From the NCBI GenBank assembly GCA_977030845.1, contig OZ365113.1:2604001-2668000 (forward strand): 64,000 nt of DNA, read 5' to 3'. Positions within the stretch are counted from its first letter, which is position 1; every line of letters begins with the position of its first letter. Under the pieces are notes generated by a model. It saw only the letters and a list, made by a program, of their open reading frames with translations, was not told the origin of the DNA and did not search any database. This DNA comes from Fimbriosthenelais zetlandica. Its lineage: Eukaryota. Both the position numbers and the translations under genes were made by a program. Below are positions 1 through 64,000 of the stretch, one piece after another.

Positions 1-43
1 GTTTTGCTGGTATATTTAAAGACATTACAATATTTGCTTCCAG

Positions 44-1625
44 ATGGTCTGTGACGCTGAAAGAATCTTCACATACGTCTACCCGGTTATGCCGGGGGGC
101 GTGCATGATTCTTATGCCTGGAGGTCCAGCGAGCTGTATGCCGGACTCCAGCAGGGCTACGGCCAGAACTTCCACCTTCTTGGTGATTCGGGGTAGGTAT
201 CATAATCAACCTTAATTTGAACCCTGCACATGACCTATCCCTGTTGAATAAATTTGACAATATAATTTCTCCCACATGATTATTTCATTATATTTGTAAA
301 GGCTGAACAAATTATAGAACTTCAAACTTGTAATCTCTGCATATTTAATACACCCCCAACAGGGAGTCTCCATAGAATTAACATTAACATAGAGAGTTTA
401 TATTAAACCCTGGGTACAATACATGACTAGAGATGGACATTCTGATTGTCTCTAATTATTTCTTTTCCTCAAGTATCAAAACTAAATGTAGAAAATGGGG
501 TGAACACACTGCATTCACTTATGGGAAACAAGGCGGGAAGCGCCTGTGGTGCTCCCAAGTGGAAAAAATGTGAACTATCCCTCACTTTCTACTGCACATT
601 TAATGAAATATAATATTGTCGTTTATGATTCATTGGCATGGTTTTTATAATAGAAGTTCTATAATTCCAGTTTTGCATCAGAGCGATTCTTGCTTACTCC
701 CCTGCAACACCCTGTGACCCCAGAAGAAAGACGCTACAATGCCGCCCACATGACGACCCGAGCTACTGTAGAACGTGCGTTTGGGGAGTTGAAAATGAGA
801 TTTAGGTAACTATACTTTCTTCTACATAGACATACACACGAGTGTCACAGACTATGAAAGGCCTCATCACATTCATATACTTCCTATGAATTCCTATATT
901 TACAGACGATTCTTATATATTCCAATAATATATTTAGGAAATATTCGTATATTTCCTGTAGTTTAGATTATAAGCACAAATTTTCTAATTATGAGATGTG
1001 GGTGAAGTATCAAAAAATAGGCTGTAATGGTGTGCTACCGTAGCCCTAAAAAGCTAGTTTTTAATAAGTGAATCACACTGGCGGACTCGTGCGTATATGA
1101 TTATGGACAGTCCCATTTATATTTTTATGTTCAAATTTTCGGGAATAGAAAGTTTCTCATTTTGATATCAAGTACTGCTACATTTTAATATTTGTTATTG
1201 ATATTATATATTTTGTTGTTGATAATTTTATTATATCATTAAAAATTGACATCAACCTAAAGGGTTAGTTATTACCCATTGAAGCATAACAACACTATAA
1301 TTGTAGTTAATGTTATTCGCTGAGGGGACATACACCATATTAACCATATTTATTGTTATATTTAATAATCTTATTTTTATACAGATGTCTGGATGGATCG
1401 GGTGGGTACATTCAGAGTAGGCCACAAATCGCAAGCCAAATGGTGTTGGCCACCGCGGGGCTCCATAACCTTGCTCGGCGGAGAGGTCTCCCAATCATCC
1501 AAGATGAGCAGCCACAGGCAGCCAGACCTCCCGTCGAGCAGCCACCACAGGTCGCCGCAGACCAGCCACCCGCCCTGGCTGCACTTGACGTCCGTCATCA
1601 AGTCATCCAAACATTCCGCGTATAG
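44..1625 (+). CDS. Harbinger (HARBI1-like, DDE_Tnp_4) transposase, 3' exons only
   Basis: Exons 44-192, 671-805, 1385-1625, all GT-AG and phase-consistent. Translation: MVCDAERIFTYVYPVMPGGVHDSYAWRSSELYAGLQQGYGQNFHLLGDSG/FASERFLLTPLQHPVTPEERRYNAAHMTTRATVERAFGELKMRFR/CLDGSGGYIQSRPQIASQMVLATAGLHNLARRR... The HDS, LLGDSG, YNxAH and VERAFGxLKxRFRCL motifs are typical of Harbinger transposases. Confidence 0.93.
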
Positions 1626-1842
1626 ATTCATTCTTTTCTTTCATTCTTTCATCCATTCATTCATGCATGTATTCATTCATTCATTCATTCATTCATTCAT
1701 TCATTCACTCATCAATCCTTCCATTCATTCACTCTCTCTCTCACTCACTCACTCACCTATTCACCCACTCACTCCTCACCCTTCATTCACTCACCCCGTC
1801 ACTCATTCACTCACTCCTCACCGACTCATTCACTGTCTCCTG
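1626..1842. repeat. (TCAT)n/(TCAC)n microsatellite directly 3' of the transposase stop
   Basis: Runs of ttcattcattca and actcactcactc are directly visible. Confidence 0.9.
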
Positions 1843-2454
1843 TAATATAATCTAATGTCACAAGGTCAATAATTACAATTGTATATATTAATAGAATAAT
1901 TTTATTTAATTTATCGCAAGTGTATGTACAAGTGTATGTACTGCGTATGTACTATGTATTGCGTTCTGTACAAAAATTGTTAATATTTTACATTTTTACA
2001 ATTCATAATAATTTTATTTATTAATAATTATGTAATATCATAGAAATAAGAGTTAACAAATCATTCTATAAATTATACTCATTCAATAAGTTACATTCAT
2101 TCAATAAATACTGGTTAAATATAAAAACGTTTATGCCTAATTCTTTCCTTTCTTTTTCCTTCCTCCTTTTGTCCCTCCTCTTTCCTTCTTCTCAATCTTG
2201 AAAAGAGATAACGTATCTATATGTCATATAATATGTAGTAATGGGTGGGGTTATTAGGGTCACTAGTATTGTTAGGATAAATTAGGATACATTAAAAAGG
2301 TGCTTTGTATTCAACAGGTTTTATGATTGACACCATATATGAGTTGTGTGTTTGCATTATACATTATAGGATTTAGCAATGACTCAATGAAAAAGTAAAT
2401 TCAGTTAAGAAACATGTAATGTCCGTTCATCAGAAGTAGAAAAGTGCCTTACCT

Positions 2455-4355
2455 TTAGGCATTACGTTTTTGGAGCAGCTGGATGATGACTTTCTGTCCA
2501 GCCACCAGCTGCTCCAGGAGCTCCTCCACACGCGATGTGGGCACTGATGTATCTGCTGCATCACGGGGAGGGGCAAGGGTAAGGACAGCTGGACCAAGGG
2601 CTGCTGGAGGGGCTAGGGCAAGGGCAGCTGGAGGAGGGGTGGGGGCAAGGGCAAGGACAGCTGGAGGAGGGGTGGGGGCTCGACCAAGGGCTGCTGGAGG
2701 AGCTAGGGCAAGGACAGATGGAGGAGGGGTGGGGGCAAGGGCAAGGACAGCTGGAGGAGGGGTGGGGGCTCGACCAAGGGCTGCTGGAGGAGCTAGGGCA
2801 AGGACAGATGGAGGAGGGGTGGGGGCAAGGGCAAGGACAGCTGGAGGAGGGGTGGGGGCTCGACCAAGGGCTGCTGGAGGAGCTAGGGCAAGGACAGATG
2901 GAGGAGGGGTGGGGACTGAGGCAGTGGATGAAGGAAGGGAAGGGCTATGAGGTCGGGGTGGGGAAGGGGCTGCACCCCCTTCATATAGTTGTAGTGGCAT
3001 GTGGGTGTCGGTAAATAAATCGAACATGGGCAAATCATCAAAATTAATTGTCGACAGTGGTGGTGGTATTTGGGGTAGAGGGGAGGGATTGGGGCGGGGT
3101 TGAGTCTGGAGTAGAGGGTGAGATCGAATCTGGGGTAGTGGATTGACTTGGGTCTGGGGTGGAGGGTTGACTTGGGTCTGGGGTGGAGGGTTGACTTGGG
3201 TCTGGGGTGGAGGGTTGACTTGGGTCTGGGGTAGTGGGTTGACTTGGGTCTGGGGTGGACGGCGGTCGGTACTCCATGGCAGAGAGGATCCTCTGGCTCC
3301 ACTAACCCCTGGAAAATACAAAGGACTTTGATAAGATTATGTTTAACATAAATCTCAGACTGACAATAACAAAATATAACTACATTACTGGCTCCATAAT
3401 GAACAAAGGATATTTATGTTTGCCAGAGGCCACACAACCATGTACATAAATACAAATCTCCCATCTGTTTACTGTTGTCTGCCTGAGCGAGACAGAAAGT
3501 GCATATGTTCCTTGAGTATAGTCGAGAAATTAATCCCTTGCGGTTAATGGAAAAACATTTGTATGAAAAGCATATTATGAAGATATATATTTATACCTTC
3601 AACGCTGACCTCCCCCGAAAAGTGCAGGGCCATCGCCTGCAGTTCCGTCAGCCTGTCTTTGGCAGTTATGCCTGGGGCCCCCGTTTTTCCAAACGCTGCT
3701 TTGTTCTCGAGATTCTGGAAGTATGGACCACATTTTATTGTCAATAATCACTGTTAACCTTACATTGTTCTTACAATGTTCTGATGGCCATATTACAAAT
3801 AATTACCTTCATCCTCGTGTTAGAGGTGAAATGCCTCAACTTGGACTGGACCTGCTTTAGGTCCCTTCGCACATTGGAAACGGCATTGACAGCATCTGTT
3901 AAGAGCCAAATATATTATATTGAATACCGTACATTGTTCTTTTTGTTGTGAAATCTTAAATTAGAAAACTACGGTATCATAACTGGCATTCTTTTACTAC
4001 ATGTTCCGATAGGCATCATCAATCAAAGTGCAATCAAAGCATGAGGTTTTTTTCTGATGTTTTCTTGTAGCACCCCCTAGTTGTTAGCCACCCAACCATT
4101 ACGCACTCAACCCCCCACCCCGACTCCCACTCCCATCCCCACCAAAAACCATACCTCACCTCTATAGTCTCTCAATTTGGTACAAGATTTGTGCTTACCG
4201 AGTATTTCTTGCCATGCAAGATTTTTTCTCATGTTCGACCCTCCAGGCCCATTATGGGAGCCCCTTAATGTCGATCGCCTTTGCAAGGCTGCATGCATGA
4301 GGGCATGTGTCTCCTCTGCTCCCCAGTTATCGCTGCGTTTCCTTTCAGTTTCACC
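2455..4355 (-). CDS. Myb/SANT-like DNA-binding protein of the Harbinger element (second transposon gene)
   Basis: Exons 4355-4199, 3895-3807, 3714-3597, 3308-2455, GT-AG and phase-consistent. N-terminus GETERKRSDNWGAEETHALMHAALQRRSTLRG...RKNLAWQEIL/DAVNAVSNVRRDLKQVQSKLRHFTSNTRMK is a trihelix/MSANTD pattern, followed by a Pro-rich repeat region and the C-terminal helix VEELLEQLVAGQKVIIQLLQKRNA*. A possible first coding exon is 6791-6777 (MVGKK, phase-0 GTAAGT donor), tentative. Confidence 0.85.
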
Positions 4356-6885
4356 CTGCAAATAGGGGAACAAATATATAATAATTATGACGAGGTTTTC
4401 ATGGTGAGGTTTATGCATATAACTGTCGGGAAGAAATATATTTGTAATGAAATACATTCTTTTTTTTTGACATAAATCATAGCTAAAATATGGTGTACAA
4501 GGCAACACACTAAAATAACACGGTCACCTGGAATCAAGGCCTAGTAGGCCTACCTAGATAGAAATGTAACTCCAAATTGTTAGCATAAATTTAGTGTTAA
4601 TTAAATGTAGGCCACTGATTACGTCTATACTACGACTACTGACGATGTCAAACTTGCTGATTCTATATGTTGCTGAAAGAAGATTACCATTAGAATACGT
4701 GGGATAAATAATTTTGGGGGGAATATGACACCGCATCTGTTGTAAACAAGTAATTTGGTGGATGCCAATGAAAAACGTTTTCCCCACGTAGGGCGTAATT
4801 TAGGTTTCTGCCGTACGCTTGGCCTAATGCAGGTGGTTGGTGGGGGGGGGGGGGGGGGGGGGGGGTTGCTTAGTCTAGTCTCTAGGTTTTTGAACACCAC
4901 TAGGCACTACCAGGCCTAATCGGAACCCCCTGTGGACAATCCTTGGTCTTTAATGAGCCTCCCTTTGTTTAAAAAATAGGCCTATAGCTATAGCCTATAG
5001 TAGGCCTATATAGCCTAGTCTGATAGGCCTACGCCTACGGTATTGTAAAATGAAATAATTATTAATCTAGATACATTAAGCCAATTAAGCTCACTATTAG
5101 TACCGGTACCATAGCCTAGGCCTAAGTGTAACACTACAGATGAAGACCTACATTTGGTCATAGATTGGGTGTAGGCCAAGTGTTTCCATGATCACCACTC
5201 CATGGTCTCCAATCCATGGTCACCACTCCATGGTGACACCATGGCTTAGTAACGTGAGATGACGTTATGTAATTACGTCATTGCTACGTCATTTCCCAGT
5301 GAAAACTTCAGCTATGCCGAAGTCGGCCATGAGGGAAAAAAACAGGCTAAATATTGGAGAATCTTGTTTAGAAGCCCACGATACAGATAGGACCCGATTA
5401 TTTAAGATTAAAGGTCGGTATTTTAAAGTCCTAAAACTATTATTTTGACAGCACCGTCCCCAGCCCTGCCCCGGGCAAAACACAAGACAAGTCACAAGAC
5501 AAGTCACAAGTAGACTAATTAATGATAACGTAGGCTATCTTCCCAAAATGTCATTAGTTTGTCATGATTTAATTCCAGAAATTATCAAACATTTTGATGA
5601 TTTCAATGATTTTCAAAGATTACCACAGAGGGCCGGGTATTTTCTGATTAATTAGTCAATCTACCCGGAGATGACTCCCACCACGTCCTTACCCCACTAC
5701 CGGTATGCCTACTCTGGCTCTGCCCCATACCCAGACACAGTTTTCAGGCATTGAACAATCATTCATCAATTAACAAGCAAATGCATGTCTTGGTTCAAAC
5801 ATTGGCACAAAACATGGTGATGGGGCGAATACAGACTAAAATAACAGGGTCTAGATAACCTACAAATAGAAATTTAGGCCTACATGTAGCCTAGGCTATA
5901 TTAGTATTATGTCATTATGATCGGCCCCTTCTACTTAGAAGACCTAGCCCTAGGGTTGCACAGGCTCCACTCAGCGTCTGTTCCTGAAATAGGGATGGAT
6001 ATTCTATCTAGCCTACATGCTGCTACATAACAATTAAATCGTCAATTCTTGCATTTCCCTCTTCAAATAATATTGATCTAATTGATCAGTGACAAGTCTA
6101 GATGTCAAAGACAAACTTGCTGAGTGTTTGTTGCTGAATGAAGTGACAGGAAGAGTTAGAACTAAGAGCCTAAAGAGGGAGGCCAATGATCTTGGAATGA
6201 TTTTCAGTTTGGGAGTGGGACAATCCCATGGCAAAATGGATAGAAATTGACCGAGGCTACTGCAAGTACAGCTGGCATTGTTATTTTTACACTTGACAAG
6301 TGACTTGTCAGTACATGGCACCGCTGGTAGTGCCTTAGTGGTAGCGCACAAGACAAGACCGACAAGTGGGCGTGGCCGTGGCCAACCCCTGTCAATAGTC
6401 AGTGGCGAGTTACGGCAGCTAAATACTTTTGTTTTCTCGATATTCTAACTTGTATAACGGGTATTACTTATATTATATTTCATTAAATTATTTTCTATTT
6501 GTTGGTGGATGTAAGAAAAATCAAAAAGAGCCGTACTCTTGTCAGTTTTGGTCCATTGGTCAACTTTGCACTGCGAGCGAGCCTCTACTCTATGTGAATG
6601 TCAATATAATCATACAAACTTCAAAGTTTCACCACCGCTTCTCACCCTTATGGGCAAAAATGAGTCAAATTACAAGTACATATATTAAGCCGGCTTAATT
6701 TTCTTTCCTATGACCTATCATCGAAGCATACTGGGGGGATCATTTGATAATTATTAACAATTTTATCAATACTTACTTTCTTTCCAACCATCTTCGGCGT
6801 CGTCTGCTTGTTGACAGTGGAAATGACGTCATAGCGGGGGTGTCGCGTGAAATTTGCGCCGCGATAACGTTTCTATGCCGACGGA

Positions 6886-7053
6886 TGTCCTAACTTGGGA
6901 CATTCGCTAAGACACCGAGCCGAGTTTACGCACGCTGTCCTATCTCATTATAAAATGGTAAGCCGATTTTGTCCTAGCAAGATGTCCTAGCTTATCCTAA
7001 TTTAAGACACGTTTCTAAGGATTTTGTCCTATCCATTATGAAAGGGGCCCCAG
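6886..7053. repeat. Harbinger right terminus: subterminal TGTCCTA motifs, TIR and CAG target-site copy
   Basis: TGTCCTA at 6886, 6936, 6970, 6983 and 7025. Terminal 15 nt (7036-7050) read GGGCCCCTTTCATAA on the minus strand. CAG at 7051-7053. Confidence 0.7.
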
Positions 7054-10000
7054 GATTTAACGATAGAAAATACTCAGTACAAAAGCTCCACACCAGTAAG
7101 CTAGGAAAACTCAACCTCAACCCAAAACAGTACTATACATTCTTCCGTAAGTACTCTAGAAATCTTATGCTTTTTATTCAGGGCAATCGAACGGTACTGA
7201 AGTTAAACTAATGTCTTTCTACTAAGTGTCAATCTATCATGTAAAAAACTTTTGACGAAAGATACGCATTAGCTGGAACAGTCTAGGAACTTAGCTTAGG
7301 TCTTAGCCTAATAGGTCAAAAGAGTTCTAGTCATCGCATAAGGTGCTGCTAAATATAACAGCGGAGTAGAGAGGAACTAAAGTCTTTCTGGACAACATAA
7401 ATATCGGTGATACAGCCGCTTTAAGTGTAGGCAATCAAATCTTAACAGTAACATGCATATTAAACAGTGAACTAAGCCTACATGAAAGTGAAACTCGTTG
7501 GACTTCCATCAAAACCATCAATCTCTTCGGTAGCTCCCAGGCCTTGCACATCGTTTAACCATCTAAAAATAAGAAAATAATCATATTGTAAGAGAATTCA
7601 TCAATACGTATAAGACCTATATCCATGCCAATGTACAAACAAATAAGATAGAATATCTTTGTCTCTTAATCGTATTGCAGCCCACACCCCTGATAATAGT
7701 TTCCTTGGATTTGCTGTGCCCAAAGTGGAAACCAACCACACACTGAAGGAGAATATATCACTTTTATACGGCAAAGATCCCACCTACTTCCAGGTATGAA
7801 CGAGGGAGATCCTTTATTTTAAAATATATTTCTAAAATATATACCTTAAAACTTTTAAATGTAGGCCTACATCAATATTGACCTGTACCCAAAATTGATC
7901 CAAATCTTTACTTTATTCATATGGTTCTTTATTTTTAATTCCAGGAAAAGGAACATTTTATTCATAAAATCGGAGCGGTGTTCCCAGTGCATGCCACTAC
8001 AGGGATGGGTCAGCTGCACGGAGTGGTAAACCATGGTGTGCTGACAGGCCTGGAGTACAGAAAACTGATGGAGAAAACGAAGGTAACAAATAATACCAGT
8101 AATCTATCTGTTACCATCCGTACCCAGTGCTGCTAACTGTGTTATAAAAGGCCAGCCATGTCTCCCACTCTCTGTGGTGAGAAGCATGTAAAAGCCCACC
8201 CATGTCTCCCACTGTTGGGTATGTAAAATGCCAGCCATGTCTTCCACTGTCTGTGGTTAGAGGCATGTAAAATGCCAGCCATGTCTTCCACTGTCTGTGG
8301 TTAGAGGCATGTAAAAGGCCAGCCATGTCTCCCACTGTCTGTGGTGAGAGGCGTATAAAAGGCAAGACATGTCTGTATTTGCCATTTTTAAGGTCTTTCC
8401 TTTACCACAGGTGATGTTGGGAGTAGGTCTGCCGGTAGAGAGCTCTGGAGCCCTGGAGGCTATAGCACGTGGTATGGCTTTCATACAACCAGTCCTGCCA
8501 GTCAGCCAGTCAGATAAAATAATGGAGGGCAAACCCACGACAAGAAAGGTAGGAATAAAGCTATATTACAATGTTTTCTTCAATCTGAAATATCTAAGGG
8601 TGCAAGTTAGAATTCTGATTTGATTTCAGGATATTTTCATTATTATTATTTTCAAAATTGTTCCATTACAAAATTTCAAGATCCTAAGAAGACTTATAAT
8701 CTTTGTATGTACAATATACACTTATAAGCTAGAAAGTCATGGGTTCAAATTTCGCTGAAATCGCAATCTTTAAACAAGAAAGTTTTAAGCCAATATATTT
8801 TGACTTCATCAATTTAGAAATGAACTTGTCGTAAGAAAGGTTGAGAAAGTTACATAATTTTAAGGAGAGCCTAAATGTGTGATATTTAAAAAAGTATTGG
8901 AGTAATGTTGAAGGTATATCTATGATTTATTTCTGATACAGTTGACGAGCCAGGTACCGTACCTGGAGAGGTTTATGGGACCACCATACGTGTACACCAT
9001 CGACGAGAATAACGATCAACAAATTAACACAACATTACAAGCTATACTTCACACAAAGGTAAGCACTCCTCCGCACATACTCATCCTAACATCAAATATT
9101 AAACGATACATGGATACATGGAATTGTGAAAATCATAAAATGGCACATGGCTTGACAGTTGTGGAAATCATATAATATAATATAATATAATATAATATAT
9201 GGTTATTCCGAATTTTGCCCTCTTTTTCCCAGTTTTGAAGAGTTCCCCATTTATGACTGATTTTCCCACTATCTTCCCCATTTTAACCACTTTCTCAGCA
9301 TTGACCAATTTTTCACATTTTCTGATCATTACTTCCGATTTTTCACTGATTTCCGTTTGATTTATACACAATTTATTAACTTATTTTTTCAATTTATCAA
9401 TTGTGCCCATTTTAACTATTTCCCACTTGTTTTAAGCTGAGGGCCTTCCTTCCCCGGGAGTTCAGCATGGAGGGAATGTTAGAGAGACTAGCTGTTTTAT
9501 TTGAAAAACAGAATTTCTGTGATCCTGAAAGTCCAATCTGGCCACCTGTGTCTGAGATGAAAGTTACTGTGTCAAAGACAGGCGAAGACTGCATAGACAC
9601 CTGCCACGCCCAAGGCAAGTATAACGTCACTGATTGATTGAATCACAGTTATAAGTTATTTTTGGGCTATGATCTATAATTTCCATATATCCTATCTATT
9701 GGCGGCAATGGAGATTATGCCTATATTAATCAGAAAGCGCACCTGGCAGTGTGAGTGACGTCATTGATCCCCAGATCTACAGATGTTTTCTTGGAATAAA
9801 TATTCTTCATTTTTTCACCCAATGTATCTCAGGATAAATAATTGAAGGTGTTTTGTTTATGCAACACTACATTATACTAGCATTTTCTTCCCCTTTCATC
9901 AACATTTGCTAATAAATTCCACACTATTTTTATGTTACAGGACTTGTTTGTGAACCAGCATACTTTCCAGAAATCAATGGCGACCATTTCAAAAGGTAAT

Positions 10001-10579
10001 ATACTGGCGCAACACTGACACATACATCTCAATACCTGGCTTCTCTGTAAAGCTCTTTGAAATGGATGACTCGTTATTTCTGTGAAATGTGCTTTGAAAC
10101 TACCAGATAACATTCGCTGAAAAATACTTCAATAATTAATAAGTTGCTGACAGTCTCTGTCAACATTTCTATGAATTAATTTATGTTATCGTATTTTTTG
10201 TCACAATCAGTGGCCATACGTCCGGTTTTCATGATAAGTCAAGCCAGCCATATCACTCTAATTTGCATCTCTATACAACTATATCGGGTTCTACTCTGCT
10301 AGCCTATATAACGATATCGAACTCGGTGAATTATGGATGAAAATACTTTAAAATGATTTCTATGTTTTTTGCAGGTTGAATATTTCTTGTGTAGAGACAG
10401 TCAGAGAGAGTGACATCTATTATCCTGCTGTGGTGCTAGACACGGGAATATGTAAACTCCAGTCTACCCCAATATTACACAGCTGTGCTGGCCGACAAGC
10501 TGGACTTGTCCGAGTCTGTCCCTGTAGACAATATATTAAATACCAAGTGGGCCTGTGCAAGACATGCCTTCAACCTTAA
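7051..10579 (+). CDS. MGAT5: MGAT5-like alpha-1,6-mannosylglycoprotein 6-beta-GlcNAc transferase (GT18), 3' part; first exon here is truncated by the Harbinger insertion
   Basis: Exons 7051-7146 (partial), 7681-7793, 7945-8082, 8411-8548, 8942-9058, 9437-9614, 9941-9995, 10375-10579. Motifs GKLNLNPKQYYTFF/PHTPDNSFLGF, GKPTTRK/LTSQVPY, CEPAYF and RVCPCRQYIKYQVGLCKTCL match MGAT5 (GKWNLNPQQFYTMFPHTPDNSFLGF; RVCPCRDFIKGQVALCKDCL). AATAAA at about 10615. Confidence 0.93.
8145..8373 (+). repeat. 44-bp minisatellite array (about 5 units), MGAT5 intron
   Basis: Unit GTAAAAGGCCAGCCATGTCTCCCACTGTCTGTGGTGAGAGGCAT. The same family occurs at 41547, 46043 and 55697. Confidence 0.92.
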
Positions 10580-11961: not shown

Positions 11962-14666
11962 TTACTGTAGGAGTAGGAAGTTCTTTATATAAGTGGGCTG
12001 GGGCAGGTCCAGTATGTTAGTCAGGGCCATGTTGTTATTTCTAAAATGTCGCCGCACGACAGAGCGACACATATCAGACAGAGGGAGTGTGTTCTTCACC
12101 AGTTTCTCCAGTAGTTCGCGTCTCTGGGGCGCGTCTATCAAAAAATCCTCCCTCTCTAACTCATCAAAAAGCCAAGTTTCAGCATTGACATTACAACCTG
12201 CTGCCAACAATATATCAGTCAGGTTAAAACGCTCATTGCGAATGGACGCTTCAAGTGGGGAGAAATTTGCATATTCATGAGCATCGATTGGGGCTCCATA
12301 AAAGAGTAAAAGATTGGCCATATCAGCATAACCAGCCATACAGCAGGCTACCATGGGAGGTGCGATCTTCACACCTCTCCTCCTAGTGTGACCGTCACGT
12401 ATCTTTGCACCAGCGTTTAGGAGTATCTCAGCGACTGATACCGCATTCATACCCACCGCCACATCCAGCGGTTGAACCCCGGACGCACTAGACCAGTTTA
12501 CATCCGCCCCTCGGTCAATCAACAATCGGATGAATGCCGGTTGTTTAGAGGCGCGATCGACCGCGATGGTGAGAGCAGTTTGTGAGTTATCAGGAGTTGT
12601 TAGATTAACATCTAAACCCTTCCCCCACCGCGGATCCAGGAAGATCTTCACCATCCCCCATTTCTGCCATGACAAGGCATGCATTAATGGCGTCTGTCCT
12701 TCTCTGTTAATAAAGTTAGGAGAGAGTCCATCTTCTAATAGTACCTTCACCACGGCACCATTCTCATGACTGTAGAGACAGCTGGTCAGGAGTGATTGTC
12801 GACGTGCATGGCTCACAGAATCCAGCGTCGCATTATTTTCCAGGAGCAGTTTCACGACATCAGCATGACCGTTGGTGATGGCCATACATAGTGGGGCATC
12901 GCCTGCTGCGTTACATAGATTAACATCACACCCGGCACCCACCAGTCGCTCGACGATACCTAGATGTCCCTCCCGCGCCGCCAAACCTAGAGCGTTATTA
13001 GCCAAAGTCTGATCCCTCACGTCTAAATCTATCGGCTCCCAATCGGCCGAGTCCTTGTTGTTCTTATCGTAAGCGAGTAAGAGATCCAAACACTCCGGGG
13101 AGTTTTTGTGGGCGGCGATGTGGATCGGGTAGAGATTGGTCACTTCCTCAGCGATATTCACGTCACATTTGAGGATGAGGAGCTGCTCGGCTATACTGAG
13201 CTGCTCATAGTGAAGGGCGGTGTGGAGTGGGTGGTTGCCATGGCAATCCGCCTCATTGATGTCTACTGTGGCGTCATGGAGCATTTTGAGAGCTGTGTCA
13301 ACTTCCCCGTAAGCGATGGCCATGCATAAATCCTCCGCTCCCGATCCTGAAATACAGATATTATACAGATATTAATACATTTAGATGCCATTTCTCAGTA
13401 TAGTTTCATTTATTTCTTTCAATTAATGAGTTCTTATAATGCTCAATAAGAATCTCACAACATAACACAAATTGCCTAATAGGAAAATTAATCTATTCAT
13501 AAGGATAAAAATGTTAGGTATGTATGACTGAGAACATTGAGAAATTTATCCTGCAAAATGTTGTTTTTATTAATTAAAAATATGATTTTAAAACTGACTT
13601 ACCCAGTTTGTTCTTTTTCCGGTTGCTGAAGCCGGTGGGGACAGGGTAGCCTGTAAACAGGAGAGAAAATATTCCTACAGACCAAAGATATTCAATAATG
13701 AATTATCATCTATTTATTGAAAAAATTATATTTTGTCTATGTTTATTTTAACTACCTCTCTCTTACTATTCCTCCCTCCCTCTCCTCTTTAGATACCTCC
13801 CTCCCTCTCACTACCCCTCCTTTTCATCTACCCTCCCCCCACTCTCACTTTACTACCCCTCTCAAGTTCCACCCACACTCTCTACCCTCAATGCTCTTTC
13901 TAGTACTCTCCCTCTCAACTCTATGCTTTTAAGTTTATCTCTGACGACTCCCATTCATCTATCCTCTACTCCATTCTCTTTCTCTACAGTATATATCAGG
14001 TTCCGTAGACTTAGAGGAAACCAAAATTCTAGGAATTTCAAGAATAAAATTGGACTTTTCAAGGAATGAAATTTGGCATATATGAGGTTTTTCTCAATAT
14101 TTTATGTAAAGTCTGAACTGTTTCAGAATCCATACCCCTGGTCCCATAATTGACACGCCTGATCCACAGCGGATTAAAATGAGGATTGATCTTATACAAG
14201 CATAGCAGAGGCATTTATATTAACCAAAACATTTTAAGGTTTTTTCCTGGAGTCTGATCGGTTTTCCGGGAATTTCCAGTACTGGAAAACACCTATCTGA
14301 TTTTCCAGGAATTTATAGGAGTTTCCAAGAGTCTCTAATAATATTCATTCCTCTTCCTCCCTTTCTCCCCTCACTTAATTGCCCACCTACCGGATCCCAA
14401 CCATATACATTACACATATCCACATTTACCTGTTATATCACATAACACTCAGGGAGACAATGTCAAACAGCCAGCCATGCTGTCATACAGTCATGCCTAC
14501 CCTCCACCATCCTTCCTGCCCGCACATCGCATTATGAATATGTGTCAAGAGAATATATCAATAAACCTTATTGTAGGCGATCACACAACCGCTCATATTT
14601 ACCTGTAGCGTAGGCCTTCCCTCCATAAGCATCCTTCCTCGTCGTTTGCCTTTTCGCGACGATCAT
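11962..14666 (-). CDS. Ankyrin repeat and SOCS box-containing protein (ASB-like), about 498 aa
   Basis: Exons 14666-14603 (MIVAKRQ...), 13650-13603, 13346-11962, all phase 1 GT-AG; 1497 nt in total. Multiple ankyrin repeats (GNHPLHTAL, YPIHIAA, NALGLAAREGH, GDAPLCMAI, GQTPLMHAL) and a C-terminal SOCS box (LPLSDMCRSVVRRHF...LDLPQPTYIKNFLL). The two small 5' exons are less certain than the main exon. Confidence 0.9.
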
Positions 14667-16662: not shown

Positions 16663-19600
16663 ATGGCGGACGATGGGCAGGCTGCCAAACTGAAGGAGGA
16701 AATAGACTTCCTTACTAGTGAGTTATCATTATTTTAAGCGAATATTTTAACACAAAAGGAACCTTTAGGAACTAAAGAATCTAGTAGATACCAAAAGTGT
16801 ACATTTTGATTCTTTTCTGTCACTATATTCGGTAATTTCTCTATTATCGACGATCATGCTGTGGCCTATTTTGCAATCCTCTTGAGGCTATTCCTGGAAC
16901 TGACAGCTGTAGCAAGTGAGCAACGCCTACGAAAATGAAACGTTTGTGTGGTTATTGTATTGCGAAATAAGATACCTTTTCAGTCGGTCCATAATTTTGA
17001 CGTTTCAGATTTGATCAATGACGCTAAGAGTAAGAGAAGTGCGTACTATGGGAAACCCAGGTCGTTCAACCAGCAGAACTTTTCCCACAGAAAATGGACC
17101 AATCCTTCCCAAGGTTCATCCAGAAATATTACTAAACCCCCTACTACTGGTGAGCTCTAGTTGTGTTTTAGATGTACGTCAATTTCCTTAGCAAGTGTGT
17201 ACAAATATAGGCCTACCGGTAGCTTGATTTCTTTATTCTAATAATCCCAGGCAATAGAATTAAATAGTGCAGTACTACCATATGTTACGAATTCGTATGA
17301 ATTCACCGTTGAGTAAGTTGATGAAATTTCCTAAATTTAATTTTAATATAGATTCTACCTTAAAAACATAAAATGAAATAATGAATATAAATTCTCCGAA
17401 TATAGGTGATGAATTCTTTGAAATTTATTAAATTTATTAAATTGTTAAGTTGTTAATGATTTTTATAAATTCTTTTTATTTAGAATCGCAGAAATCCCAG
17501 CAAAATCCACCGATGAAAGTAGAATCAGCAATGACGGTATCACGTACTGTTGTGCCACCTAGTGGCTCATCCTTCAAACTCCCAGGACCGGCAAAGACTA
17601 CAACCTCTATACCCCCAACACACCCCACAACCCAAACAACCCAGAACAGGCAGGTGGCCATACCAAAAACTAAATACCCAAACTTTAAACCTCCTGGAAG
17701 TCCAAAATCCACGGTCCATGTCCAACAACGAAAGAAAGTAGTTGGGACACCTGTGGTTAATCCGAAAGTTCAAAGACATGTATTTTCATCTGGCAGTTCT
17801 AGTTCAGGGTTGAAGAATGTCCAAGCTGTCCGACCCTTTAGTGCAGGGAGTCAAAGCCCCACCATCATCCAAGCAGGGAAAAAAATAATCGAGGAAATAG
17901 AAAAGTTGAAAAAAGCTCAGGATGCATTGGAGAAAGCAGAGAAAATGAGAGGGAAAATGGGAAGTAGCTCAAAGTTAAAGACTTCCAAACCAAATCTGAC
18001 GACAGAGAGAAAGAGTGGTGCTAATTATGAACAGAAACTTGTTCAAAACGTGGACCAGAAGCCTGGTCCAAAAGTGGACCAGAAGCCTGGTACAAAAGTC
18101 GGATCTACAGCTCCCTCTCTGAACGTAGTAAGGAACACAAGGTATACACTAGTCAAAAAATCACAGGCAGCAGAAGCACATTCCTTCCCAGCTCCAAAAA
18201 TACCTGCTCAAAACCCAAATATCAAAGCAAAGACGCACAACAGAACTGTCATATCAAATGTAACTGCTCAATCACGGAATCCAAATGTTTGGACACGACA
18301 AGCGGTGCAAAGCCGAAAGATACCGACCAAAAATGGTCCTCCCCTGGTCAAAATATCAACGTCAAATACACTGACTCATTCCAGTTCAAATGTGACCATG
18401 CCAAAGACGCCTGTGATGGCTCAAGCTAGAACATCAACCCCAAATTTATCAAATCAAGTGAGAAAATCTCCATTGTTGAGTGGGAATCGGGAAGTTAAAT
18501 TACAACGGAATCAAATATCTGGTAATAGATATAGTTTAGTCAGGAGTAGTGAGACGTCAAAACGAACTGTGAAGTCACCCCAGGGGATTCAACGACGAAG
18601 GGTGGTGGTCACTAGAAATAAACTCTACAACAGTCCAGTACCGAATAATAAATATAAACTGGTCAAAAAACATAGCACCACTTCAGCTACTGGACAGGCA
18701 GCTAGCCCTAAACCAAAAACTGTGGCTCAACCCTCAAAAGTGAAGTCTGAACTTAAAGAAAGTAAAGTTGAACCTAAAAAGAAGCAGTCGTCGTCGGTAG
18801 TGAATGAGTTATTAAGGGAGTTATCCGTTATAGATATTGCTTTTAAAACAGCCAAACTTCAGTCAAGTCAGAGGTTGGTGCGTAAAGCGGTCATGATGAA
18901 ACAAAAGTCACTACAGAGGAGAAACACAGAGAGTCGTAGTCCAAATACGGCCAGCGGTACGGGCAAGTGGGGGACGTCTGGACGACGTAGGTCCAGATCA
19001 CGGTCTACGTCAGCTCATGTAAAGTCAGACCCACGTCATGCTACGTCAGGTCACGTCCCCCCACGTCATGCTACGTCAACTCACATCCCCCCACGTCATG
19101 TCAGACCCGGCGTCTCACCGCGTCATGTGACGTCACGTTACGTCAGACCCGGCGTTTCACCACGTCATCCCACGTCAGGTCATGTCAGATCTAGGAAGCA
19201 CCAGTCCAGATTCTCGCTGAGAAAGAACACAGCAGGTCTGTTTCTATTTTTAAACGATTTTTGTTTTGCTTTTTTTTAATCTATTTCTCAAAGAAATGTA
19301 ATTTTTAGCTAGGAAAATTACATTATTTTATACTTTCACCTATTTTTTTTTAACAGTTAAAAGTTAATTTCTATTTGCAGATGAGAGCCTTAGTATGAAC
19401 CAGTTACTGGGGAGGAAGATAAAGAACCTGAGTTGTAACAAGTACAAGTTTGTGAGTGCCGGGGGTGAGAGAGGAGCGAAGACTCCCGACAAAACTAAAG
19501 TTACATCAACTAAACTCAGGTAATGTCACAAATTTTACAACTATTAAAATGGTTTATCTGTGAGTTCAAGATTTACAACTGTTAAAACATTTTTTTATCT

Positions 19601-22600
19601 GTCAGTTTTTCCACATATTGGTTCTTACTGTCTCGAATTTAATTTTTTTTAGATTGGAGAATGTCACTGACTTATCAAGTATAATATTAACATTTACAGG
19701 AGCAGTAGGGCTCGCTCTACATATATAGACGGGGTTCTCTTCAGGTCGACCCACAGTCAGCTCAGACGAGCCTCCAACTCTCACGCTCCCTCCAAAAAAC
19801 TCAACAACTGTAAGTCTTCACAAATTTTTGAATTTTTCAAAAATATTTGTTATCAAGGAATTGTCCAAGTAGACTAGGAGTCTGTCCTTTTCAATGTTAC
19901 TCAGAATATTTTAAAATCCTGATTATTCTGTTTGAGCACAGACATTGAGAAAGTGAAGTAAAATGTTGACTATTTTCTAATTGTGTTTGTTTTGTAGTCG
20001 GGAGAAGACAGAGTCGTGCCTTGCTACTGGGAGGTAATAATTTCAGGCTTACAAGAAATGGATGTACTCTAAAACGTGTAGGACGACTCTCACTCAGTCA
20101 GCAACAAGGCGAGTACATGAGTGAACTCTTCCAAATAGCGAACACATTTCAGAGTCCTAAGTTCTATTGTAATAAACTTGTATACAGCTCCCTCTGATTA
20201 GTGAACAACTCCATTATAGTGAACATTTTTTCTGTCTCTAAAAAGGGTTCACTGAAATACAGAGATTTTGCTGCAAGATCAATAATTTTTAGTTATATTA
20301 TTTTAAGTGATATTTCATCTGTTATAGATACGCCTCAGAGACATAGGATTCAGAGTAGGAGTCAGAGTTTCTCAAGACAAGCTTCATTCAGTAGGACTAC
20401 TGCTACACACAGGACTGCCAGGTAAAGAAATACTTTCATTTAATTCATACTTCTCAGAACTTGTGGGGTTCTTTAATACATATTTTGTTTATTATTTCGT
20501 TTCTTATATAGCGCAGTATTTTATTATAGTTCAGTCCGCTTTACATATTTTGATAAAATATTCTGAAAAAGAAATAGATAAGTAAAGTTTTACGACCCAC
20601 AAGACCGATACTGCGATAAGTTAGACTAGACTGGCGGCGGGTTGTATTAGACTACACTATATAATGATCTAATGGTATATATAGACTAAAGTTTTAATTT
20701 CTCCACCATTTTCAGTCAGGCCATATCTCGGAGTATAGCCACGGCGGTGGTGGCAGCTCGTCTCAGGAAGCTAGTCAAGCCTCAGAGACAGTACTGTATC
20801 TTCTACAACAGGTTCGGCAAGTGTAACCGAGGTGAACAATGTCCTTATATCCACGACCCTGACAAAATAGCCGTCTGTACCAGGTATGTCTAATCTTTAT
20901 ATTTAGGTTAATTCTAACTCAAAAATACTTTATTTTTGGGAAAAATTCATACAAGAAAAATAGTAATCTTACTTGTGTGTAAGAGTGATCACTAAAGTTC
21001 CTGGAAATTAAAATAATTTTTTCTGCTTTACATATCTGCAGTGGAACCTCACATGATGGTCACGTCACTAAAGTTTATATTCAGTGACATTCTTGTAAAC
21101 CATATTCTCCACTTAGTTTTCTCTCATTCTCCATGTAGGTACATGTGTCTCATTTCTCTGATCTCCATGTTTTCATCTATTTGGCTCATCTCTATTTCTC
21201 TGATCTCTATTTTTCTCATCTCTATATCTGTCATCTCTATTTATCTCATCTTTATTTTTTATTTCTATTTCTCTCATTTCTAATTGCTCTGTGTCTATTT
21301 CTCTCATCTCTATTTCTCTCATCTCTATCTGTAGGTACCTGCGCGGCACGTGTAAGGTGACTGACTGCCCGTTCTCTCATCAAGTATCACGTGAGAAGAT
21401 GCCCGTATGTACACACTACCTGAGAGGTGTGTGTGCACGTGATCACTGTCCTTACCTGCACGTTAATGTGAGCAGAGACGCAGAGGTGTGTCAGGACTTT
21501 ATAAACGGTTACTGCGGGCTAGGTGACAAGGTGAGACACACTTTAATTACTCTCTCTGTCATTCTTTACTTTCTGTCCACACTTTGTCCTTCTTTCCTGT
21601 GTCCCTCTGTCTGTATTCCTGTCTTCCACCCATCCATTCATCTCTCCATTTATCCATCCAACTATCTNNNNNNNNNNNNNNNNNNNNNNNNNNNNNNNNN
21701 NNNNNNNNNNNNNNNNNNNNNNNNNNNNNNNNNNNNNNNNNNNNNNNNNNNNNNNNNNNNNNNNNNNNNNNNNNNNNNNNNNNNNNNNNNNNNNNNNNNN
21801 NNNNNNNNNNNNNNNNNNNNNNNNNNNNNNNNNNNNNNCATCCACCCATCTATTCATTCATCCACCCATCTATTCATTCATCCACCCATCTATTCATTCA
21901 TCCACCCATCTATCCATCCACTCATCCACCCATCCATCCACCCATGTATTCATCTATTCATTCATCCACCCATCTATTCATTCATCCACCTATCCATCCA
22001 CTCATCCACCCATCCATCCATCCACCCATGTATTCATTCATCCATCTATTCACTCTCATAATCATACATATACCAGAGGCAGAGTACCAATAACATTTAG
22101 TTCTCTTCACTCGTTTTCCTATTTCTATTAAGAGTCATAATTTATCAGATATGCACGTCTGGGTTGATACATGTTAGATATCCTCAGTAGATATATATAT
22201 ATATATAGTGACCATTAATGTATTCCGCCCATCCAGTGTAAGAAGAAGCACACCCTTATCTGCCCTGTCCACGATGGTCAAGGAGGCTGCGCTAAGGGTC
22301 AGTCATGTAAACTGAAGCACCCCCAGACTGCTGGCAAGCGGTCAAGACTGACCAGTACGTCCCAGTCTAAACCAGGGTGAGAAATACTTCTATATACTTA
22401 TATTTCTATATTATATTTTTCCAATGATTTCCTAAAACATTTTCAAGCGAATATGTTTCTGATTGAATATCTTTTTGTGACAAAAAATGAAACATTTTAA
22501 AGATAAGTTTTCAAAGAAATTTTCTTTAAAGCGACATGTTTTATCACTATGACATATACATTGTATACTCACTAAAGCGACCATCCCACTACCCACTACC

Positions 22601-23245: not shown

Positions 23246-26200
23246 GTAAGTTTTTTCCGGGTTTTATTCCCAGATTTTCCTCGCTGTTTTTGACAGTGTA
23301 TACACTCAGGAACTATAGTTCAGATCCAGGTGCATATAATCAATATTTCCATCAGCTAAAAAATATTTCATAAAAAAAAATATTTCATAAATATTTTTGG
23401 AAGCATTTTACTTGCCTACTAAAGTGAGTTGCAAAACGCGCAACCCCCCTCAGATTTCTATGAGTGAAGTAATGGGTTTCATTTAATTATTCTTTAAATA
23501 TTTTTTTAAATTTAATGTGGACAAATAAATCAATGTTATATTTTGCGAGATATAATGTTATAGTAGTAGAAATAGTCCTTTTTAAATTCTTCTTTATTCC
23601 AAATTTATAAATGTGGACAGATAGAGTTAAACCTATTTTATTTTTTATTTAAAGTAGAAATAGTCTTCATATTTTTATTGGAAAAATTGTTGGTAAATGA
23701 AAACCTTTGGTGTTGGAGAAGTATTGTGAGTTGGGTCACTAGTTTCGGATGACAGCATTATAAACGATTTATGTTATGTTTTAATTGTTTTATCCGTTAT
23801 AGCCTTTGATGACTTCCCGTTTAGTTTTGATGCAGGATATAGTCATGTATAAGAACAGCCGGGGGAAATAAATAAAAGTATTTATGCAAACAATGCATCT
23901 TTTATAGAGACAAAAAAATCAAACTGTCACGATATATTTGTAAGATGGGTTAGAGACAAGCAGGATGCTGTGCTTGTTCCGAGTTATCACGGATTTTGTA
24001 TTATTACATCCTCATTTCTGTTCCTTATGTTGATCCCAAACGATTACTTTCCAAACAAAATAATTAAATTCCAAAATAATGTATTTCGGGATCTGGCAGT
24101 CAGATGAACCGGCAATTTTAACATTTTTTGAAGTTAGGGTGGTTATTTTTACAGAAGAACAGGGGAAGTTATTTGGTTATTGTTTGGTGGCTGTAGGGAC
24201 GAGTTCGGCGCCTTAGCGTTCAGGAAGTGACCTATTTTCTGAGTTGATACATTTATTTCTGTGTATATATGTCAGTGTTCTATGTTAGGGTACCCATACC
24301 CGTTACCCTTCCAGGATTTGTGACTGAACTTGGTTAAAGCTCAATAAAGTTATTTTTGTTGAAAATTGCCGAGTCTGTAGTCATTTCAGAAGTTAATTAT
24401 AAAATATAAACTATTGTATTAAAAGATCTGTTTTCGTTGAAATAATATCCATTTTGTTTAAATATTACCATTTTTATTCACTATATGGAAGTGTTCGCTA
24501 ATCAGGGCGAGTTGTAAACCACATTAAGAACCTGGGACTGAGAAAACGAAAGTGTTCACTGTAATGGAGGTGTTCACTAATCAGAGGGGGACGTATCCGC
24601 CAGGTTACTAAATCATTCACTATAGGGAGTATTCGTGAATACGTTTACTATTTAGAGGTTTACTCGAATATGTATTCAGGGTAAACTGTTATCCCATTTT
24701 CCAATCAGGGAGAAATCCGGGAATTCCATTGTCCTGTGTCTGTGTCTTAGTTTCAATAAACAGCGACTACGTTTCACTATTAGGCTTAGTTGACGATATC
24801 TCCAGATAATCATCCTGAAATTTTGAGAAATCAGCAGGAAAAGATGAGGGAATTATTTTCCCTGAAATGCTGGGGAAGTCTGTAGGCCACCTGTGCCGGG
24901 TTTTGCCGCATCTGCTGGTTTCCCATATTTAAGTCAATCTTCATTATTCGTGCTTGTTGAAGTAGTCCAGAGTCACCGCCACTTTCAGATGTCTACATTT
25001 TTGCTGAGTCATGGATACTGGGTTAAGCGGCGTATCAGTTGATAATGTGAGATATCAGATGTCGTTGTATACCAGTCTGATAACTAATCGTACCTCCATA
25101 CATACTAGTACATGTACATCCTCATTCAACCATGAATATACTAACCCAACAAACGGAGTTCCCCTTCAGGAGTGGTTGGATCATGTGATAGCTCCCATCA
25201 TTATTTGGTCGAACAATAAGTCACATCTCAAGGTCATGGGACCCCTAAAAGGCCCCCACCCACCCCCATCGATCCCCCATAAACCCAGCTCCCCCAATCC
25301 ACTCCTGTCCTTCCCGGAATGCCCATCTGATAATAATTAACTAGTATAATTTTGGATAATTTTCTATAGGCCTACCCTTACTTAAAAAGTGGGAGTATTG
25401 CCATCACGAATTATAGGCAAACGAAACAATATTTTGGTATTGTATATCTTGGTCATTGGACCCGTTTCAAAAAGAAATAACAATGCTAAGTCTATGGCTA
25501 ATATTTGTTTTGACACAGACTCTTGATGTAATGATTTTCAGCATGGTTAATCAGTAATATCAAGTGTACAGATGAATATAACGCATCTTTCTTTTGTAAC
25601 GGGCCTCAGATAGTTTGAAAGATGAAATAGAAAAACTTTGTGAAAATTGAGGTTCAAAATTGACGATGAAAGTTAATTAATATTGAAATGAAGACGTCCC
25701 TAAATTAACCGAGTGTAAGTGGCTTTTGTCCCAATAGGCACAGAGACAAAAGAATACGACGCTCGGAAACCATAAGAAATAGAGAGGAAATTACCTTAAT
25801 CAAAACTATCCAAACTGATGACCGTAAAGTGCGATACCGTGATGGTGAAAGTCACACCGACCCAAGCTGATATTAATGCGGCTAATTATGTTTCACTCGT
25901 AATCTTTAATAGTTGGATGACTATCTTTAATAGTTACTTGATGTAAACTTTGGATTGTTTTGGTAAATTTTCATAAGAGAGGCAGATGAGTTTTCGGGCA
26001 ATTAATTACTCTAGCGATTAGGTAGGCAAATGAGTTCTCCAGCAATTAGTGAACTGATGCAAATGAGTACTCTAGCCATTAGAAAGGCAAATATGTGGTC
26101 GAACAATAATTAGAGAAACATGTGAATTCTCGAGCAGTTAGGTAATCTAGCCATTAGAAAGGTAAATGAGTACTACAGCTGATGATTTGAGAAAAATGTA

Positions 26201-32820: not shown

Positions 32821-33993
32821 ATGGAAACCAATCAGCAACTCGGGGACGACCTTTTTCGAACCCTCGACGAACTTTCAGAAATCAGCCAGTATTGTGTGGA
32901 CGTGGATACAATGCAGACATATATTAAAGGAGAACAAGAATCCTCTTTGAATGGATGTTACATGGGTGGGGAGCAGAGGGGCCCAGTTCCCCCGGTCTCT
33001 CTGGCTATTGACGGGGGACTCCCGCCCCTCTCCCCGGCCTCTGACGCTTCCACTGTTCCCAGTCCCACTGACCATGTTCGTCCTCTACTAGGGAATGAAT
33101 CATGTATAGGGATGGGGCGAGCTTCCAGTCCCATCCCTCAACGGGGACCTACTAATGCTTCATTCTTGGACGATGCCAGTTGGATCATTCGGAGCCTGAC
33201 AGGAGTGACCAACCCAGATACGTGGGAGTTGGGTCTACTAATAAACGGTGGGCAAGGGGCATCCCAGCAGCAGCCGCAGCAGCAACAAGCGCAGCCGCAA
33301 CAGCAGATGGCGGCCCAGCAGATGCAGCAGCAGCCGCAACAGCAGCCCCAGCAGCAGCAGCCTCCCCAGTCCCACCATCATCAGCCCCAGCAGACCCAAC
33401 CCCAGCAACTCCCCCTCAAAGTCCAACAACCCCTCACTATCAACACCTCTACGACTCACCTACTCCAGGGTGGGGGAGCAGGAGGGGGAGGCGTTCCCCC
33501 TCTAGCTTCCCCTGACAGCCTTGCATCTCTTACTGATCTGGATGAAATCATGTCGGATAACAGTAATAGTTGCCCGCCCAGTTTGGATTCAGTATCCTCC
33601 CGACCTGCCCATCGTCGCTCTAAATGTCGTCTTCGCAACTCAGGTTCCCAGGACATTGACGATGACGAACTCATGACGCTACCGGTGCGTGAACTCAACA
33701 GACGACTCCAGGGTCTCTCCCGCGACGAGGTCGTGCGTCTCAAGCAGAAGCGACGCACATTGAAAAACCGCGGGTATGCCCAGAATTGTCGGAGCAAACG
33801 CATGCAGCAGCGCCATGTCTTAGAACAGGAAAATACTGAACTGAGTAACCAAATACAAAAACTACAGCAGCAACTATCACGTGCCCAGCAAGAACGCGAC
33901 TGCTATAAGCGACAGTTTGAAACGCTTCGCGCGAGAAACGGATCAGAAAGTTCGCTTCCAGGGTCGCCAGAAAGTTGTTACTCTACAGCCTGA
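32821..33993 (+). CDS. MAF: Large Maf bZIP transcription factor (c-Maf/MafB/traffic jam-like), 390 aa, single coding exon
   Basis: Extended homology region and basic region [48 protein letters not shown] followed by a leucine zipper. The long acidic, Ser/Pro-rich N-terminus with a polyQ tract indicates a large rather than small Maf. Confidence 0.95.
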
Positions 33994-55434: not shown

Positions 55435-55646
55435 ATGGCTAACGCCACTAAATTCACGCGCTTTATTAGCACTATCATGCCAAACAAGAAGAAAAAAAAC
55501 CGAAAGAGCGAGGACGAGGGCGACATGATCATCTCAGGCCCCATCAACGTCAAACATGAGTGGCATGTAGGATTTGATGAAACGACGGGGGATTTTGAGG
55601 GCCTGCCCCCAGCCTGGTCTCAATGGTTGCAGAACTCTAATATCAG
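55435..55646 (+). CDS. PAK: PAK alternative CRIB/PBD exon A
   Basis: [70 protein letters not shown]; acceptor at 55388, phase-2 donor TCTAATATCAG/GT. Confidence 0.9.
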
Positions 55647-63692: not shown

Positions 63693-64000
63693 GTAGGTTT
63701 TTGAAAAAAAAATTTCTCTCTCCTTTTATTCCAGGTTAGAATAAGAGAATTAAGTGAAAAAAAATTGATCAAGTATTTTTTTTTTACATCAGGAGGTGCA
63801 GCTATATTTCTTGACCGAATATATTTTCTTTTTAGGTATTTTCATATACATTTTAGGGTGTGGGATTCAGTGTCCAACTTGATTGTGTAAGGTCTTGGGT
63901 TCAATTCTTCCCACAGTCCTGGAAAATCCTCGACTGGGCGACAATTTTTGTGTAGCAAAAACTGCACCAAAGACACTAAATATCTCTTAGCAACTTGCAG

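Follow-up and report, generated by a model that had tools for sequence, protein, structure and literature searches.

Among DNA transposons, the NuwaI group has been set apart from PIF/Harbinger within the PHIS (PIF/Harbinger-ISL2EU-Spy) superfamily (Han et al. 2015, PMC4482050). According to that study, NuwaI elements produce 5'-CWG-3' target duplications, have inverted repeats usually starting with GGG and encode a DDE transposase together with a Myb/SANT protein. Table S5 of the same paper lists members in which DDE_Tnp_4 occurs with Myb_DNA-bind_5, with lengths of up to 8497 bp, filed as Harbinger in Repbase; an example is the 8.5-kb NuwaI-4_CGig (Repbase Harbinger-8_CGi). Here we describe a stretch of 64,000 nucleotides of Fimbriosthenelais zetlandica (contig OZ365113.1, positions 2,604,001 to 2,668,000; the whole of it is called the window below), in which the right end of a transposon resembling NuwaI abuts the coding sequence of MGAT5, a conserved N-glycan branching enzyme of glycosyltransferase family 18. 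The probable explanation of this arrangement is that the transposon has inserted into a CAG lying inside a conserved MGAT5 coding exon. A first-pass annotation of the window, made from its letters only, had stated that several animal Harbingers use CWG target duplications, a behavior documented for NuwaI (PMC4482050).

The junction and the truncated exon

The features that meet at the junction are the following.

7033-7050, plus strand: transposon terminus CCATTATGAAAGGGGCCC, which on the opposite strand gives an inverted repeat that begins with GGGCCCC
7051-7053, plus strand: CAG flank, a candidate 3-bp target-site duplication, formed by bases 2-3 of a Pro codon and base 1 of a Gly codon
7050-7146, plus strand: remaining 3' part (97 nt) of an MGAT5 exon, identified by profile and by alignment with relatives, whose ancestral form measured about 134 nt

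The junction reads ...TGTCCTATCCATTATGAAAGGGGCCC / ...CCATTATGAAAGGGGCCC to 7050, then CAG at 7051-7053 and then GATTTAAC...; on the inward strand the terminus is GGGCCCCTTTCATAATGG and starts with GGG. Read in frame from 7050, positions 7050-7146 encode a segment of 32 MGAT5 residues, PGFNDRKYSVQKLHTSKLGKLNLNPKQYYTFF, followed by a splice donor (TTC TTC C/GTAAGT, with the GT at 7147-7148). These residues match positions 212-243 of the 557 of the Pfam profile Glyco_transf_18 (PF15024, E 9.8e-5), residues 158-189 of the 515 in solved MGAT5 chains (E 1.2e-3) and the MGAT5 proteins of Styela (396-427) and Ciona savignyi (228-259). A word-based protein search with the open reading frame of the truncated exon gave no matches, and exact look-ups of the open reading frame 7038-7208 and of the neighbouring ankyrin/SOCS gene found no record in the collections searched. 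The match of the 32 residues is not due to chance, as the profile runs on through seven collinear exons further downstream. The coordinates given in the first-pass annotation are correct to the base.

The ancestral structure of this exon was mapped on the annotated MGAT5 loci of Styela clava, the jellyfish Rhopilema, Branchiostoma floridae and Nematostella. In S. clava the preceding exon ends ...TTACA/GTAAGT, while the homologous exon starts tttag/G TGC AAC ATT AGA GTA CTT GAT AGT TTT GGT ACA GAA CCA GAA TTC and ends ATG TTC C/GTAAGT. The exon starts acag/A TGT AAA ATT CGA and ends TAT TTC C/GTACGT in Rhopilema, and starts tag/A TGC and ends ATG TTC C/GTAAGT in Nematostella; in Branchiostoma it also begins at the Cys, residue 422, and on the 3' side it forms one exon with later ones. 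The 5' boundary, in phase 2 just before the conserved Cys, is therefore common to four species from three phyla, and the 3' boundary, in phase 1 after Phe, is common to Styela, Rhopilema, Nematostella and the window. The exon of the relatives begins 12 codons further 5', and that of the window is short by exactly the first 37 nt of about 134, the MGAT5 homology ending at base 7050, i.e. where the transposon ends. Moreover, the C-CAG of the window corresponds to a CCA G at this point of the Styela exon. A conserved exon start, combined with a truncation by 37 nt at the transposon end, favours an insertion into the exon over an insertion into an intron. The proposal that the element had split an MGAT5 exon at CAG thus gains an exon cut exactly at the element end relative to the conserved structure, while the duplication itself is a candidate, only the right-hand CAG being in view. 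An intronless MGAT5-like gene from a Logan contig was also considered as a reference for exon structure, but it is uninformative on intron positions.

Insertion into an intron, which is unlikely, would require the Glu and the Pro/Gly codons to be separated by an intron in this lineage, with CAG/G at 7053/7054 as its normal acceptor; the polypyrimidine tract would then be damaged and the rest of the gene intact. An AG does lie at 7052-7053, the piece 7054-7146 is 93 nt long with phase 1 at both ends, some intron positions further downstream differ between the window and Styela, and the window lineage is very divergent. However, the four species of three phyla have no intron at this point and share the boundary 12 codons upstream, so that a new intron would be needed and, in addition, a transposon landing exactly 3 bp away; the identity of the Pro codon CCA with the CCA of Styela would also be a coincidence. 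The polypyrimidine tract of the CAG at 7051-7053 is, besides, the poorest of the eight sites in the gene: pyrimidines make up a fraction of 0.45 of the preceding bases, which include an AAAGGGG run, compared with 0.65-0.75 in the seven real acceptors. This value makes the CAG weak also as a cryptic acceptor, a role that had been suggested for it. Very improbable is a further possibility, that the element is spliced out as a very large new intron, with the duplicated CAG at 7051-7053 as acceptor and a cryptic donor in or before the left end, leaving a functional MGAT5 with a small in-frame change; if it were true, an autonomous CWG-targeting transposon would have been caught making an intron in a conserved animal exon. 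A start of the protein at the in-frame ATG 7038, inside the terminus, was rejected, as such a protein would be without at least 157 residues of the crystallised enzyme and without everything upstream of the crystallised region.

The MGAT5 gene and its history

Downstream of the truncated exon, the window holds the rest of the gene in seven exons, all in frame in the spliced model.

7681-7793, plus strand: MGAT5 exon
7945-8082, plus strand: MGAT5 exon
8411-8548, plus strand: MGAT5 exon
8942-9058, plus strand: MGAT5 exon
9437-9614, plus strand: MGAT5 exon, with a GC donor at 9615
9941-9995, plus strand: MGAT5 exon
10375-10579, plus strand: last MGAT5 exon, including the stop codon

These exons carry the family 18 profile on to its last position (557) and to a stop codon. 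The spliced model comprises 1041 nt, or 346 codons of the C-terminal half, with no internal stop or frameshift, and was aligned with six MGAT5 proteins over 346 residues. The Pfam scan took in six of the eight exons (five of the seven downstream), all of which match PF15024, covering positions 212-557 with gaps; the two exons outside the scan align to relatives. Six donors of the model are GT and one is GC (CCCAAG/GCAAGT at 9615), the other junctions being canonical. At this last place, a Logan contig from a related species has a normal GT (AAAG/GTAGAT).

The N-terminal half of the protein (MGT5A_N and positions 1-211 of the family 18 profile) gave no match in the window at E values of up to 5. 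In all the relatives the homologous segment is preceded by C-x-x-R-x-L/V-DSFGTE, and neither this sequence nor DSFGT is present in any frame of the window. The absence of such a piece, reported in the first-pass annotation, is therefore borne out over the full 64 kb. The N-terminal half may lie upstream of the window.

As for the history of the gene, the same Logan contig carries orthologues of exons 9437-9614 and 9941-9995 with identical lengths, and another contig of that sample carries an orthologue of the neighbouring ankyrin/SOCS gene. Between the window and this species pN is 0.147 and pS is 0.81 over 77 codons. The low pN relative to pS and the equal exon lengths indicate that purifying selection acted on this MGAT5 lineage over most of its past. 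Since 346 codons contain no stop or frameshift, either the gene was disrupted recently or its inactivation is incomplete; open downstream exons fit a young insertion and do not prove it. The first-pass annotation had described the exons of MGAT5 and of both transposon genes as free of stops and frameshifts: this holds for the 346 codons of MGAT5, and the transposase keeps its motifs, while the openness of the Myb-like frame is weak evidence. Synteny through the ankyrin/SOCS gene was followed in two related species, in which no MGAT5 was within reach.

Several observations weigh against a simple insertion into the exon. In a maximum-likelihood tree the MGAT5 protein of the window groups with those of the tunicates Styela and Ciona (support 98/92), on a very long branch of 1.73; even the closest species whose gene structure is known is distant, and a lineage-specific new intron may have arisen at 7053/7054. 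Motifs that are otherwise invariant in MGAT5 are altered (WGxW to LGKL, GFPYEGP to GLPVESS), and the gene may represent an atypical paralogue that could be lost with little effect. At the terminus itself, the palindrome GGGGCCCC allows the boundary to move by one base. Finally, the window shows the transposon and its flank on one side only; a left inverted repeat, a second CAG and a 5' half of the exon would all fall outside it.

Two other explanations were weighed. The element end could abut a 5'-truncated MGAT5 remnant, produced by deletion, rearrangement or partial duplication; the left end would then have no matching half-exon beside it, and a complete MGAT5 may be present elsewhere. That the N-terminal half is nowhere in the window, that the right junction alone is visible and that conserved motifs are unusually altered in the protein would agree with this explanation, which we nevertheless consider unlikely: all seven downstream exons are open and have good splice sites, purifying selection is strong and exon sizes are conserved in comparison with the related species, and the CWG triplet at the flank is what a clean insertion of NuwaI type predicts. 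An assembly artefact, in which a transposon copy had been mis-joined to the MGAT5 locus, is highly improbable. It is true that repeated elements are often points of mis-joining and that masked or gapped stretches occur elsewhere in the window, but the nearest run of N is 14.6 kb away, at 21668, and a join exactly at the terminus with a canonical CWG triplet would not be expected from a random mis-join.

The transposon and the remaining features of the window

The part of the element contained in the window, which we assume to be single from 1 to 7050, is organized as follows.

1-7050, plus strand: at least 7.05 kb from the right side of a NuwaI-like DNA transposon of the PIF/Harbinger superfamily, with two genes, subterminal repeats and a GGG-type terminus
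20-192, plus strand: transposase exon, region of the second catalytic Asp, DDE_Tnp_4 profile positions 27-83 (Pfam E 1.1e-7), ending ...HLLGDSG, donor GG/GTAGGT
671-805, plus strand: transposase exon FASERFLLTPLQ...TVERAFGELKMRFR, putative region of the catalytic Glu, open frame with cag acceptor and gtaact donor
1380-1625, plus strand: last transposase exon, CLDGSGGYIQ...ATAGLHNLARRRG..., open frame to the stop, start approximate
2455-3321, minus strand: last open reading frame of the Myb-like gene, long and proline-rich, ending ...LLQKRNA and a stop, no Pfam match
4197-4355, minus strand: exon with a putative Myb/SANT-like DNA-binding domain (GETERKRSDNW...AWQEILG), Pfam Myb_DNA-bind_5, acceptor ctatttgcag
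6886-7031, plus strand: five direct TGTCCTA subterminal repeats, by motif count

The assignment of the element to Harbinger in the first-pass annotation agrees with the DDE_Tnp_4 match, with a Myb_DNA-bind_5 match lying just below the cut-off and with the subterminal repeats. The first transposase exon (58 residues) scores 32 bits against PF13359, whose cut-off is 24.8. The visible exons retain the GDSG and VE..FG motifs, and the exon at 671-805 is the one that would contain the catalytic Glu; the N-terminal part with the first Asp falls outside the window. A word-based search of a protein collection with the last exon gave no matches and no close homologue, and no close relative of the transposase was found in the collection searched.

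The Myb-like gene is convergent with the transposase gene. Its exon at 4197-4355 matches positions 1-53 of the 78 of PF13873 (Myb_DNA-bind_5) at E 5.1e-4 and 20.4 bits, just below the cut-off of 21.7, within a single exon. Other frames are open too in 2455-3321, so that the open frame is weak evidence that this gene is intact. The same frame contains in-frame tandem repeats (2498-2923 and 3076-3267), with 90-nt units 95-97% alike and 24-nt units. Open reading frames in 4500-6880 gave no Pfam match. In the non-coding part of the transposon, TAGGCCTA and AGGCCTA motifs are dense at 4900-5130 and 5870-5910.

Towards the terminus, TGTCCTA occurs five times within 146 bp and in one orientation, out of eight occurrences in the whole 64 kb, inside the last 165 bp of the element. 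Longer subterminal repeats are GATTTTGTCCTA, present twice, and CATTATAAAATGG compared with CATTATGAAAGGG; CATTATRAAAGG is a further one. Repeats arranged in this way are usual for the end of a cut-and-paste element, and the TGTCCTA copies are likely binding sites of the proteins of the element. No credible left inverted repeat was found in the window within 3 mismatches, nor any cluster of TGTCCTA in reverse orientation, from which it follows that the element runs past the window start and exceeds 7.05 kb. A hit at 35208 was rejected as a left inverted repeat, having 3 mismatches, a wrong position and no context resembling the element. There were no further copies of the element in the window, and the terminal 23-mer had no match in a scan of metagenome contigs.

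Outside the transposon and MGAT5, the window contains a family of tandem repeats with a unit of about 44 bp (similar to TAAAAGGCCAGCCATGTCTCCCACTGTCTGTGGTGAGAGGCATG) in four arrays, 87-94% alike, at 8145-8382 and 55697-55810 on the plus strand and at 41547-41770 and 46043-46351 on the minus strand; one lies inside an MGAT5 intron and one beside a PAK exon, and their long open frames are artefacts of the repeats. Convergent with MGAT5 is an intronless ankyrin-repeat gene of 453 codons (11962-13323, minus strand) with a weak SOCS-box match, whose orthologues are found at 64% (Logan ERR14368249) and 49% (ENA ERZ25767047), its other matches being generic ankyrin ones. On the plus strand, an open frame of 612 codons at 17441-19276, rich in Ser, Pro and Lys and with no Pfam match, is followed at 20690-22377 by exons resembling CCCH zinc fingers by eye; the two are probably one gene broken by a masked run of N. 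An intronless gene of 390 codons (32821-33993, plus strand) encodes a large-Maf bZIP protein that contains a long poly-Gln/Pro tract (bZIP_Maf, E 4e-31). The P21-Rho-binding domain (CRIB/PBD) is matched by each of two consecutive exons at a distance of about 900 bp (55342-55647 and 56264-56485, plus strand; Pfam E 5e-14 and 8e-16). Exons of a PAK-type kinase (63301-63693) follow downstream of this pair, whose members may be mutually exclusive or may reflect the duplication of a 5' module. In the reference MGAT5 locus of B. floridae, short tandem duplicates of exon edges occur: the CYFRVVDSFGTEPEF exon has its first 15 codons in three copies, spaced about 187 bp apart (20032-20450), and about the last 20 codons of MGAT5 recur five times downstream of the stop (23545-24575).

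Consequence of the probable insertion and comparison with known systems

The mechanism that we propose is that a large, autonomous cut-and-paste element of the PIF/Harbinger kind, most like the CWG-targeting NuwaI, would have entered a CAG in the MGAT5 exon. The element would measure more than 7 kb and carry an intron-containing DDE_Tnp_4 transposase gene with a convergent Myb/SANT gene. We infer a simple insertion with duplicated CAG, in which case the missing 37 nt (a split codon and the 12 codons of C-x-x-R-x-L/V-DSFGTE) and the upstream exons should be found beyond the left end of the element. The exon is broken at about residue 158 of the crystallised luminal enzyme of about 515 residues. 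Since the 5' half of the exon would be left with no donor and the 3' half with no good acceptor, the allele probably yields no functional enzyme, and this copy of MGAT5 is most likely knocked out, by an insertion that would be recent. The co-orientation of transposase and host had been noted correctly, as both are on the plus strand; the transposase gene would lie between the two parts of MGAT5.

If the clean insertion is true, a conserved enzyme of N-glycan branching would be knocked out naturally in the reference individual, or its allele would at least be severe. The insertion would also be evidence of recent mobility of an autonomous NuwaI-type element, and the site would serve as a convenient presence/absence polymorphism marker. 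It should be noted, however, that it would be an ordinary exon-insertion allele, which leaves the understanding of such transposons or of MGAT5 unchanged.

Compared with NuwaI, the element is similar in its DDE_Tnp_4 gene and putative Myb_DNA-bind_5 gene, in its GGG terminus, in its right-hand CAG (CWG) flank, in its large size and in its animal host. The comparison is limited in that only the right end is seen here, so that the duplication is a candidate, and it differs in that both genes carry introns. The label of Harbinger with CWG duplication is reasonable for the element, and a placement in NuwaI would go by features, not by a transposase tree. With classical PIF/Harbinger elements, including the progenitors of HARBI1 and NAIF1, it has in common a DDE_Tnp_4 nuclease with a putative partner of Myb/SANT/MADF type, candidate short inverted repeats and subterminal repeats. 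However, classical elements make TWA/TAA duplications, and the presence of CAG at the flank here, in place of TTA/TAA, suggests the CWG-targeting branch instead.

Introner-like DNA transposons reportedly make new introns through target duplication, and similarly a duplicated CAG at this locus could provide an AG acceptor at the right junction. Introners, however, are small elements whose other end has a GT or generates one, whereas this element exceeds 7 kb, starts with GGGCCCC and has a weak polypyrimidine tract. Insertions of DNA transposons into exons are a textbook class of mutation, and the locus resembles the null alleles that they produce, in that a cut-and-paste element breaks an open and conserved exon. 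With respect to such alleles, the host exon is here anchored by an exon structure shared across phyla, and the inserted element looks autonomous.

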